DNA of 64,000 nucleotides, from sequence record OP380604.1. One strand, 5' to 3'. The notes beneath the pieces were generated by a model, which worked only from the letters and a program-made list of their open reading frames with translations, searched no databases and was not told where the DNA came from. Below are positions 7,894 to 9,188 of this stretch, piece after piece (the first letter of the stretch is position 1; each line of letters opens with the position of its first letter). The position numbers were made by a program, and so were the translations under genes.

Positions 7894-7896
7894 CAG

Positions 7897-7920
7897 AATC
7901 CGCCTTCGGGCGGATTTTTT
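7897..7920 (+). terminator. Terminator with CUUCGG tetraloop
   Basis: AATCCGCC-TTCG-GGCGGATT followed by a T-run. Confidence 0.85.
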
Positions 7921-7990
7921 ATTTCCAAAAAGTGTTGACACTTGGTATCGTTCTGCTAATATGGACACATCTAAACAAGAGGAACAAATC

Positions 7991-8254
7991 ATGAAATACC
8001 AAATTCGAGTTTTCAAGAACGAACAAACTAAGCAAGCTTATGTTGCTGCAAACGGAGAGGCTATGGCGTCAGAAAACAAAGATTTCGCGCACCGTATGTT
8101 TGGTATGGTGTTCTATGATATGAACACATCTGAATTTGACTCTGATATCATGAACATAGAAGCAAAGAGCAAGTTCGGTGCTTTCTGTGCTGCTCGTTCG
8201 ATTGTTCGTAAACAAGGTTTTAAACTCATTACTCAATGCGAGGATCTGAAATGA
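7991..8254 (+). CDS. Early hypothetical protein
   Basis: Start at 7991 after GAGGA; promoter GTTGAC-17-TAATAT upstream at 7934-7962. Confidence 0.75.
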   Translation: MKYQIRVFKNEQTKQAYVAANGEAMASENKDFAHRMFGMVFYDMNTSEFDSDIMNIEAKSKFGAFCAARSIVRKQGFKLITQCEDLK

Positions 8255-8337
8255 AAGGCTTTACTCTGATTGAACTGATTGTTGTTGTTGCAATCCTGGG
8301 AATTTTGTTCAGCGTTGTTGCTCCTGCAATTTTCTAA
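8251..8337 (+). CDS. Mini type IV prepilin (leader plus N-terminal assembly helix only, 28 aa)
   Basis: MKG|FTLIELIVVVAILGILFSVVAPAIF*. Exact N-methylation motif (G-1, F1, E5) with the conserved G14 and P22; SD GAGGA at 8240-8244; ATGA coupling to the upstream gene. Confidence 0.85.
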   Translation: MKGFTLIELIVVVAILGILFSVVAPAIF

Positions 8338-8399
8338 AAGTAGTTGACACACCGGGCCATCATGATAAGATGGCCATATCGACAAGAGAGGAATACATC

Positions 8400-8684
8400 A
8401 TGATCAAAGTTGCTTGTTTTATCTCCCCGAAAGCTGGTTGTGTCTGGATTACTTCCATGGTGAATTACACAAAGCTTTCACCGGAAGATGCATTGAAACG
8501 CGCCAAACGTCGAGAAGCAAGCAGCCATGGTCAGGTAGATATCTATTTGAGTCAAGTTTTGGAGTTCAATGATGTTTATTGTACAATCAATGAATACCAA
8601 GACGTAGAATCTGTGATTCGTGCTGTTGATGCTGCTGGATATCGTATTATTGGTTTCCCAGCAAAAAAAGTGATTGACAGATAG
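8400..8684 (+). CDS. Early hypothetical protein
   Basis: Start at 8400 after GAGGA; own promoter GTTGAC-17-TAAGAT with IR GGCCATC / GATGGCC. Confidence 0.75.
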   Translation: MIKVACFISPKAGCVWITSMVNYTKLSPEDALKRAKRREASSHGQVDIYLSQVLEFNDVYCTINEYQDVESVIRAVDAAGYRIIGFPAKKVIDR

Positions 8685-8731
8685 GACATCCGTGATAGGA
8701 TGTCCACATTAACGAACAAGAGGAAGATGAC

Positions 8732-9127
8732 ATGAAACAAGATACCATCGTTGTAATTCCAAGTCGCGAAATGGACGGTGCTACTGGTTGTCTAAGTTTC
8801 GAGCGTATGCTGAAAGAGAAGAAAGCACAGGGCTTTATTGGCGCGGTTGATCGTTTAGCAACTATCAACCACATTGCTATCGTTGACAAAGGCAACAAAG
8901 CTTATTTCGCTGATATCATCGAGATTTACAGTGGCACAGATGCCGAAAAGCAACTGAACACAAACGACATTTATTTTGACAACGTGCGTCCGATTCCACT
9001 CTCTGCTTTGAAAGAGGCTGGTATCAACGTCAACTCCGGACGTTGCTCGATTCGTTATGCCGCACTGGCTAACATCGTTGCAAATCTGAAAAAAGAAGAT
9101 ACCGAGTTACTTTCTTTGTTCGGCTAA
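8732..9127 (+). CDS. Early hypothetical protein
   Basis: Own promoter ATTGAC-17-TAGGAT with IR GGACATCC / GGATGTCC; SD GAGGA. Confidence 0.75.
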   Translation: MKQDTIVVIPSREMDGATGCLSFERMLKEKKAQGFIGAVDRLATINHIAIVDKGNKAYFADIIEIYSGTDAEKQLNTNDIYFDNVRPIPLSALKEAGINVNSGRCSIRYAALANIVANLKKEDTELLSLFG

Positions 9128-9160
9128 GTTTATTACCGACATAAATAGTATTACTATAAG

Positions 9161-9188
9161 AACGAGTCGAAAGACTCGTTTTTCTTTT
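9161..9188 (+). terminator. Terminator
   Basis: AACGAGTC-GAAA-GACTCGTT followed by a T-run. Confidence 0.75.

Follow-up and report, generated by a model that had tools for sequence, protein, structure and literature searches.

Here, we describe a short gene in bases 1-64000 (the window) of the genome of Aeromonas phage avDM12-TAAL (OP380604.1; Straboviridae, Chrysonvirus; host A. hydrophila). Window 7900-8720 matches this record with 100% identity and identical coordinates. The gene is an 87-nt open reading frame (ORF) for a 28-residue peptide, here called the mini-pilin, which has the sequence features that define the class III signal family, and the codon pattern of its orthologues marks it as a selected coding gene. 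We propose that the mini-pilin mimics the alpha1-N segment of pilins, enters the host prepilin-peptidase/type IV filament pathway and blocks it, a reading that we regard as evenly poised. The ORF and its parts are as follows.

8251-8337, plus strand: mini-pilin ORF, 87 nt, 28 amino acids plus stop, with ATG at 8251-8253 and TAA at 8335-8337
8240-8244, plus strand: Shine-Dalgarno sequence GAGGA, 6 nt ahead of the mini-pilin ATG
8251-8259, plus strand: mini-pilin leader M-K-G
8260-8334, plus strand: predicted mature 25-residue alpha1-N segment, with F1, E5, G14 and P22

The 28 codons specify MKGFTLIELIVVVAILGILFSVVAPAIF, which is divided into the leader MKG and the mature segment FTLIELIVVVAILGILFSVVAPAIF. 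Numbered from F+1, the mature segment has E5, G14 and P22 at the positions usual for pilins and pseudopilins, and the chain is complete after residue 25. Upstream lies an 87-residue ORF, o87, whose TGA (8252-8254) shares bases with the mini-pilin ATG in the arrangement ATGA, and the TTGACA of the next promoter-like site begins at 8344, 7 nt past the mini-pilin stop. A sequence-only reading of this stretch had claimed an ORF with its own GAGGA and with ATGA coupling, both of which are present at 8240-8254; it had also claimed that the mature form stops at residue 25 with the next promoter following at once and no head, and this is what the sequence contains. An upstream ATG at 8236 was considered as the start and rejected, as it is not conserved and in Ah1 is directly followed by a stop; 8251 is taken as the real start because the ATG at 8236 is not conserved.

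The mini-pilin ORF carries no annotation in the avDM12-TAAL record, and its 87 nt are under the usual minimum length of gene callers. The existence of such an ORF is not new, because the annotators of Aeh1 and PX29 had already flagged its likeness to pilins: the record of Aeh1p044 carries the note 'similar to N-terminal sequence of bacterial secretion protein pilin', that of PX29 gp038 the note 'similar to N-terminal part of fimbrial protein', and the UniRef name of the PX29 protein is prepilin-type domain protein. Our literature search found no functional study of the mini-pilin or of any short phage relative. Thus, the earlier statement that nothing of this type had been described stands for functional papers but not for the sequence itself, given these two record notes and the longer families present in PHROGs.

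The prepilin signature was examined with profile hidden Markov models (HMMs). The mini-pilin scored 32.9 bits against the Pfam N_methyl model PF07963 (cut-off 21.2; E = 4e-8) and 35.8 bits against TIGR02532 (cut-off 16.3), so that the GFTLIE signature (cleavage after G) with G14 and P22, noticed earlier by eye of the letters alone, is confirmed by two models. The motif is of the type IVa/type II secretion system (T2SS) type; a Pfam scan of the mini-pilin at E up to 1 gave N_methyl alone, with no match to a Flp/Tad-type profile. Across all six frames of the 64-kb window, the prepilin-type motif is unique to the mini-pilin, and a chance ORF was rejected on the HMM scores together with this uniqueness. 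Full-length equivalog models were matched at their first 17-27 positions only. GspG gave the top local match (30.9 bits over 27 of the 28 residues), followed by GspH, PilA and PpdD, and no full-length equivalog cut-off was reached (30.9 vs 88.85 for GspG; likewise for GspH, PilA, PpdD, ComGC and others). In the PDB, the mini-pilin matches only geopilin, PilA and MshA chains, in each case at the N-terminus.

A class III signal peptide consists of a hydrophilic leader ending in Gly and ~21 mainly hydrophobic residues interrupted by Glu5 (PMC4471445). In the mini-pilin, residues F1-A21 are hydrophobic with E5 among them, the N-terminus is positively charged, and the mean Kyte-Doolittle hydropathy of the mature 25-mer is 2.62. 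The mature form is essentially one transmembrane helix, and its size and hydropathy are compatible with a small single-pass inner-membrane peptide. Read by these features, the mini-pilin consists of a class III signal peptide and just four further residues. Structurally, it does not qualify as a pilin, because the defining feature, alpha1-C plus a globular head, was looked for and is lacking: the stop comes after mature residue 25 and the promoter 7 nt on.

Seven T4-like phages of Aeromonas, which represent three genera, have orthologues of 27-29 amino acids, and in each the gene lies between nrdB and nrdD. They measure 28 amino acids in Aeh1, Ah1 and AsFcp_1/2/4, 27 in phiAS5 and phiWae14, and 29 in PX29 when counted from the M-K-G start (the annotated form has 31, from an upstream ATG). 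Every orthologue opens with M-K-G, GAGGA is kept 5' of the ATG in 7/7, and the TAA stop lies 2-4 codons beyond the proline in all of them. None exceeds 29 amino acids from the M-K-G start, and no full-length pilin is encoded at the nrdB-nrdD locus. A fresh nonsense truncation was rejected, as the stop position is conserved in three genera. The sequence-only reading had allowed that the homologues might be full-length pilins and the ORF a recent truncation; no full-length pilin is among the locus orthologues, and the conservation of length and codons that it had asked about is seen in a range of 27-29 amino acids, a kept frame and synonymous sites near saturation.

When the window is compared with phiAS5, 10 of the differences in codons 1-17 are synonymous and 2 are non-synonymous (proportions of synonymous and non-synonymous differences, pS 0.73 and pN 0.05), while the last ten codons vary much more freely. 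Among the seven sequences, M1-L9 (leader, G-1, F1, E5), V11, A14 and G17 (that is, mature G14) are invariant and the C-terminal third drifts; the Aeh1 mini-pilin differs from that of the window by one synonymous base change. This codon pattern indicates that selection acts on the translated product, chiefly on the leader, the cleavage site, F1, E5 and G14. Since synonymous changes dominate in the comparison with phiAS5, the mini-pilin is best described as a selected coding gene and not as a fresh truncation; a chance ORF or a neutral relic is likewise unlikely on these data. Constraint is strongest at the residues read by the peptidase and by neighboring subunits. A role as a regulatory upstream ORF for the downstream gene was rejected, as that gene has its own promoter and the peptide sequence itself is conserved.

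We propose a plausible mechanism by which the mini-pilin acts. First, a strong sigma-70-type promoter, recognized from its sequence and suggestive of the timing, would transcribe the mini-pilin together with o87. The host prepilin peptidase (TapD in Aeromonas) would then recognize the mini-pilin and probably cleave it after Gly-1. The free copy of alpha1-N may subsequently compete with host pilins or pseudopilins at the assembly platform or on the growing filament, and the mini-pilin would thereby be a dominant-negative subunit. As the outcome, the infected cell would lose type IV pili and/or the function of the T2SS pseudopilus, the candidate target machines being Tap, MSHA/Bfp or the Exe T2SS. 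Exclusion of pilus-dependent competitor phages or of incoming DNA, and a shutdown of secretion, are plausible payoffs.

Previous work on class III proteins is compatible with these steps. A protein needs no more than the class III motif to insert into the membrane, its leader facing the cytoplasm. Cleavage depends critically on Gly-1, and a shorter leader is tolerated in some systems. Subunits assemble mainly through the hydrophobic alpha1-N tract, and Glu5 is required for homopolymer assembly but not for cleavage (PMC4471445). Aeromonas has Tap and Bfp/MSHA pili, and it cannot secrete aerolysin and proteases through the T2SS without TapD (PMC3658858). We prefer a block at the level of assembly over pure titration of the peptidase because Glu5 and G14 are invariant, though cleavage needs neither. 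The functional claim made earlier from the letters, namely processing by the peptidase, poisoning of type IV pili or the T2SS and exclusion of phages, is consistent with what the sequence encodes.

The mini-pilin lies in a mosaic region in which the order of the elements is hairpin, P1, o87, mini-pilin, P2-o94, P3-o131, terminator and nrdD.

7895-7918, plus strand: intrinsic terminator-like hairpin after nrdB, with a 10-bp stem (5 GC pairs) and then a T run; upstream boundary of the unit
7935-7962, plus strand: predicted promoter P1, TTGACA-16-TAATAT with TG, 10/12 matches, serving o87 and the mini-pilin; within the cassette 7922-7993
7991-8254, plus strand: o87, an 87-amino-acid ORF (phrog_23306) whose stop overlaps the mini-pilin start
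8344-8371, plus strand: predicted promoter P2, TTGACA-16-TAAGAT with TG, in the next cassette; the dyad GGCCATC/GATGGCC spans its -10
8400-8684, plus strand: o94, a 94-amino-acid ORF (phrog_31756) with its own promoter
8674-8701, plus strand: predicted promoter P3, TTGACA-16-TAGGAT with TG, in the third cassette copy
8732-9127, plus strand: o131, a 131-amino-acid ORF (phrog_23814) adjoining in the same region
9158-9183, plus strand: terminator-like hairpin ahead of nrdD, marking the downstream limit of the plastic region

The mini-pilin is the sole ORF of this nrdB-nrdD region that is kept in 7/7 phages. The o87 family is missing in PX29 and present in six of the seven, the o94 family is missing in Ah1 and Aeh1, and of the o131 family only the last ~12 codons are left in Ah1 and AsFcp_1. 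In the latter two phages, the deletion junction falls 1-2 nt past the mini-pilin stop, at AAAAAGAAGA microhomology; here the deletion takes both downstream genes, o94 and nearly all of o131 (locus L002 1936-1975 of Ah1 against window 8335-8340 and 9085-9127). The o87 homologue of Aeh1 (locus L003 1283-1629 against window 7991-8337) is only 44% identical to o87 of the window, while the Aeh1 mini-pilin and the start of the next promoter share ~90% DNA identity with the window, which places a sharp mosaic boundary inside the overlapping o87/mini-pilin pair of Aeh1.

The promoters of this region belong to a cassette of ~72 nt that is present in three copies (7922-7993, 8331-8402 and 8661-8734) with 78% mean column identity. 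Its layout is AAAAGT, TTGACA, a 16-nt spacer with TG, TAnnAT, an AGAGGAA Shine-Dalgarno sequence and ATG. The sequence-only reading had placed the mini-pilin in an early operon; it is the matches to sigma-70-like promoters that suggest this, and early timing is a prediction from them. In T4-type hyperplastic regions, promoter-early stem-loop (PeSL) cassettes, which are repeated strong sigma-70-like promoters with a stem-loop placed around small non-essential ORFs, drive modular shuffling, nrdD is named as PeSL-associated and PeSL-like sequences are mentioned in Aeh1 (PMC2839356). Judged from that description, the cassettes of the window resemble PeSLs in their repeated sigma-70-like promoters, the hairpin before P1, the dyads and the mosaic content around them. 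PeSL-like cassettes together with mosaic content can therefore explain why the neighbors vary while the mini-pilin persists.

Several smaller features were observed in these cassettes. A perfect 7-bp dyad, GGCCATC/GATGGCC, at 8354-8375 straddles the -10 of P2, and a perfect 8-bp dyad, GGACATCC/GGATGTCC, at 8682-8703 straddles that of P3; P1 is without an equivalent. A comparable dyad, GCGACC/GGTCGC, follows the mini-pilin stop in the cassettes of phiAS5 and phiWae14. The -10 dyads could be an operator or a recombination signal.

As for the co-transcribed neighbor, o87 has no Pfam or NCBIfam match, and a word-based protein search gave one near-identical homologue. A single-sequence AlphaFold2 (AF2) model of o87 has a beta-beta-alpha-beta-alpha arrangement (predicted local distance difference test score, pLDDT, 69.6; predicted template modeling score, pTM, 0.63) and gave no significant fold match in the PDB, the top one being the GIY-YIG domain of I-TevI (E = 0.48, template modeling (TM) score 0.44). 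ARAGORN found no tRNA or tmRNA gene in window 1-64000.

Of 50,697 phage records searched by tblastn with the 28-mer, 174 have a pilin-like N-terminus. The proteins form a length series.

27-29 amino acids: Aeromonas T4-like phages
37 amino acids: Aeromonas T5-like AhP_Mru1 (CDS0313)
44 amino acids: Delftia PhiW-14 (gp120)
59 amino acids: Pseudomonas KPP10 / PAK_P3 group (phrog_10597)
66-67 amino acids: Vibrio KVP40 group (KVP40.0030 / phrog_13280), next to td
82 amino acids: Vibrio 1.081.O
92 amino acids: Aeromonas AhFM11
107 amino acids: Acinetobacter Acibel004
121-127 amino acids: cyanophage 'pilin' (phrog_3433)

In PHROGs, such proteins fall into six families; the function is unknown for five, the sixth (phrog_3433) bears the label 'pilin', and none is of the mini size of 27-29 amino acids. 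To compare lengths, one back-translated motif, K-G-F-T-L-I-E-L, was scanned and unique complete ORFs were counted. Among the matches listed, 18 of the 98 ORFs on viral contigs had at most 45 mature residues and 38 of the 98 at most 80, against 0/107 and 2/107 in cellular genomes (Fisher p = 7e-7 for <=45 and 2e-12 for <=80). In a separate bulk metagenome sample, none of the 108 ORFs starting M-K-G-F-T-L-I-E-L among the matches listed had <=48 amino acids. By this comparison, short pilin-like ORFs are a phage speciality.

Two of the short forms stand in contexts of their own. The 37-residue ORF of AhP_Mru1 (Demerecviridae; loci L012 1501-1614 and L021 5207-5094) starts with M-K-G-F-T-L-I-E-L in an unrelated context, and a terminator-like hairpin comes after it. 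A 210-kb uncultivated virus genome (UViG) from IMG/VR (locus L085 4104-4193) has a 29-residue K-G-F-T-L-I-E-L ORF directly 5' of the terminase large subunit and portal genes, a late-gene context unlike that of the Aeromonas phage copies. In the KVP40 group (loci L005 1492-1692, L006 and L014), pilin-like proteins of 66-82 amino acids are encoded immediately 5' of thymidylate synthase; like the Aeromonas copies, they are set among nucleotide-metabolism genes.

A global phmmer search with the 33-residue version starting at the upstream ATG gave 85 matches with E no higher than 0.001, some of them to proteins of 29-58 amino acids. These were left uncounted, since the short metagenomic proteins are inseparable from truncations at contig ends and at least one resembles read-through into non-biological sequence. 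One protein from the global search, P0074 (79 amino acids), shares residues with the mini-pilin as far as ...VVAPAIF, beyond which it has a small head. An origin of the mini-pilin as an old truncation of a small phage pilin-like gene, later kept, fits these observations.

More broadly, bare or near-bare class III peptides in unrelated phages might constitute a general, as yet unrecognized class of host-takeover or exclusion factors, namely substrate mimics that the prepilin peptidase of the host turns into dominant-negative alpha1-N helices, a tentative extension that we consider doubtful. Such a class would span T4-like, T5-like, PhiW-14-like and KPP10-like phages as well as jumbo UViGs. If it exists, it would shut down type IV pili, competence pili and/or the T2SS, and gene callers would systematically overlook its members, which fall under the 90-nt limit.

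Several points weigh against the proposal that the mini-pilin blocks type IV filament assembly as an alpha1-N mimic. Its leader has 3 residues instead of the usual 6-26 (PMC4471445). An M-K-G leader is also found in full-length pilin-like metagenomic ORFs, 37 of 106 of which, among the matches listed, have no in-frame start upstream. The 28-residue chain would end inside the ribosome tunnel, and for this reason a co-translational route through the signal recognition particle (SRP) would be closed to it and insertion would have to be post-translational. With no periplasmic part, the contacts that need alpha1-C or a head are, on the predicted sequence, missing. GspG leads the PilA models by only ~6 bits. 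The figures of the length survey come from the matches listed in a motif-defined set, and they give a contrast, not a census. Finally, use of pili as receptors is not known among T4-like phages, so that self-exclusion would be no evident payoff, and the gain for a phage of this type is hard to see.

Four other explanations were weighed. The mini-pilin may be a generic small membrane peptide whose class III motif serves only for insertion and whose target is unrelated to type IV filaments; candidate roles are exclusion at the level of injection or superinfection, an effect on membrane energetics, and the anchoring or regulation of co-translated o87. Genes for small early membrane proteins are indeed numerous in the hyperplastic regions of T4-type phages, with promoter cassettes on their flanks (PMC2839356), the mini-pilin start overlaps the o87 stop in most lineages, and the mature form, with its hydropathy of 2.62, is close to a single transmembrane helix. 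An anchor, however, would not need invariant G-1, F1, T2 and E5 amid saturated synonymous sites and a drifting helix. Moreover, PX29 carries the mini-pilin without o87, and the same motif recurs in short ORFs of the unrelated AhP_Mru1, PhiW-14 and the 210-kb UViG, in other contexts. We consider this explanation unlikely.

A second possibility, to which we assign a low probability, is that the mini-pilin is a sink for the peptidase, occupying the bifunctional TapD as a competing substrate or a slow-release inhibitor, so that all host prepilins and pseudopilins stay unprocessed, and that it need never reach the platform or the filament. Type IV pili and the T2SS would then fail together, and unprocessed prepilins may clog membrane-protein biogenesis. 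The invariant part of the peptide is what the peptidase reads (leader, G-1, F1 and the first hydrophobic turn), the strong promoter and Shine-Dalgarno sequence suggest a high copy number, and TapD serves both type IV pili and the T2SS in Aeromonas (PMC3658858). In addition, loss of prepilin processing is reported to harm Synechocystis through effects of the unprocessed pilin (PMC8546353). Yet Glu5 is dispensable for cleavage and nonetheless invariant, as is G14, which points to a constraint beyond the peptidase, and an enzyme that turns over its substrate is hard to titrate with a cleavable one.

It is very unlikely, in our view, that the mini-pilin is a constructive subunit which, with its phage relatives of 37-127 amino acids, remodels the surface, length or dynamics of host pili or pseudopili. 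Full-length pilins of an archaeal temperate virus do form the dominant functional pili of the host (PMC12426801), and headless or near-headless pilins polymerize, with Caulobacter type IVb prepilins of down to 44 residues (PMC4471445); the phage relatives, graded in length, have small heads that contain Cys and with which assembly is conceivable, and geopilin is among the PDB matches. A form with 25 mature residues, no alpha1-C and no exposed part, in contrast, could add nothing to the surface and would leave a gap, and a virulent T4-like phage has minutes, not generations, to profit. Least probable is a non-functional relic, an untranslated or neutral remnant of a longer pilin-like gene hitch-hiking beside a conserved promoter cassette, which would suit an ORF that is below gene-caller cut-offs and unannotated in most records and whose longer relatives (P0074, 79 amino acids) match up to the end of the mini-form as if after an old truncation, but not a pS of 0.73 against a pN of 0.05 over codons 1-17, a start, Shine-Dalgarno sequence and stop position conserved in three genera, or survival through rearrangements that cost every neighbor in at least one lineage.

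If the mini-pilin does act as a mimic of alpha1-N, it would be the smallest known member of the pilin world, made of the signal and the assembly helix only, and would offer the first example of a virus that disables type IV filament machines by imitating a subunit and not by binding the ATPase or platform. A function would then be at hand for several unknown PHROG families in phages of Aeromonas, Vibrio, Pseudomonas, Acinetobacter and cyanobacteria, and the peptide would be a natural minimal probe of how alpha1-N is recognized by the prepilin peptidase and the assembly platform. It also provides a concrete case of a conserved gene missed in annotation owing to its length of 87 nt.

The mini-pilin shares with type IVa pilins and T2SS pseudopilins a leader ending in Gly, F1, E5, G14, P22 and a 21-residue hydrophobic tract; unlike them, it is headless, has a 3-residue leader and is encoded by a virulent phage. 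The longer phage pilin-like proteins have the same K-G-F-T-L-I-E-L N-terminus and are likewise products of small genes among unknown ORFs of large virulent phages, but they extend 10-100 residues past the helix, often with Cys pairs, and are encoded at other loci; the form of 27-29 amino acids is the extreme of their length series. Haloarchaeal virus SNJ2 PilA1/PilA2 are also virus-borne proteins with a class III signal that use the host peptidase and assembly machine, whereas these pilins are full-length (154 residues in PilA1), form functional pili and come from a temperate virus whose host benefits (PMC12426801). Flp/Tad pilins and geopilin are, like the mini-pilin, headless or nearly so and mainly an alpha1 helix (PMC4471445). 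They differ in keeping the whole of alpha1 (prepilins of at least 44 amino acids; geopilin chains of 61-90) and in forming filaments, and the mini-pilin is shorter than the shortest prepilin named in PMC4471445 (44 residues). The Flp pilins, moreover, have a different motif and their own peptidase.

Aqs1 of DMS3 is a phage protein that switches off type IV pili. Tip of D3112 does so via PilB, as mentioned in PMC8764522. Both are soluble and ATPase-targeting, and unlike the mini-pilin they are neither membrane peptides nor pilin mimics. The closest functional analogue of the proposed mechanism is PfsE (PA0721) of phage Pf4, a 30-residue inner-membrane peptide with a cytoplasmic N-terminus that binds PilC, stops the extension of type IV pili and confers superinfection exclusion (PMC8764522), a precedent for a peptide of such size. 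PfsE is carried by Pf inoviruses, has no class III motif and binds PilC through its aromatic YAWGW; the mini-pilin, which has no Trp or Tyr and is not homologous to PfsE, would act instead by substrate mimicry.

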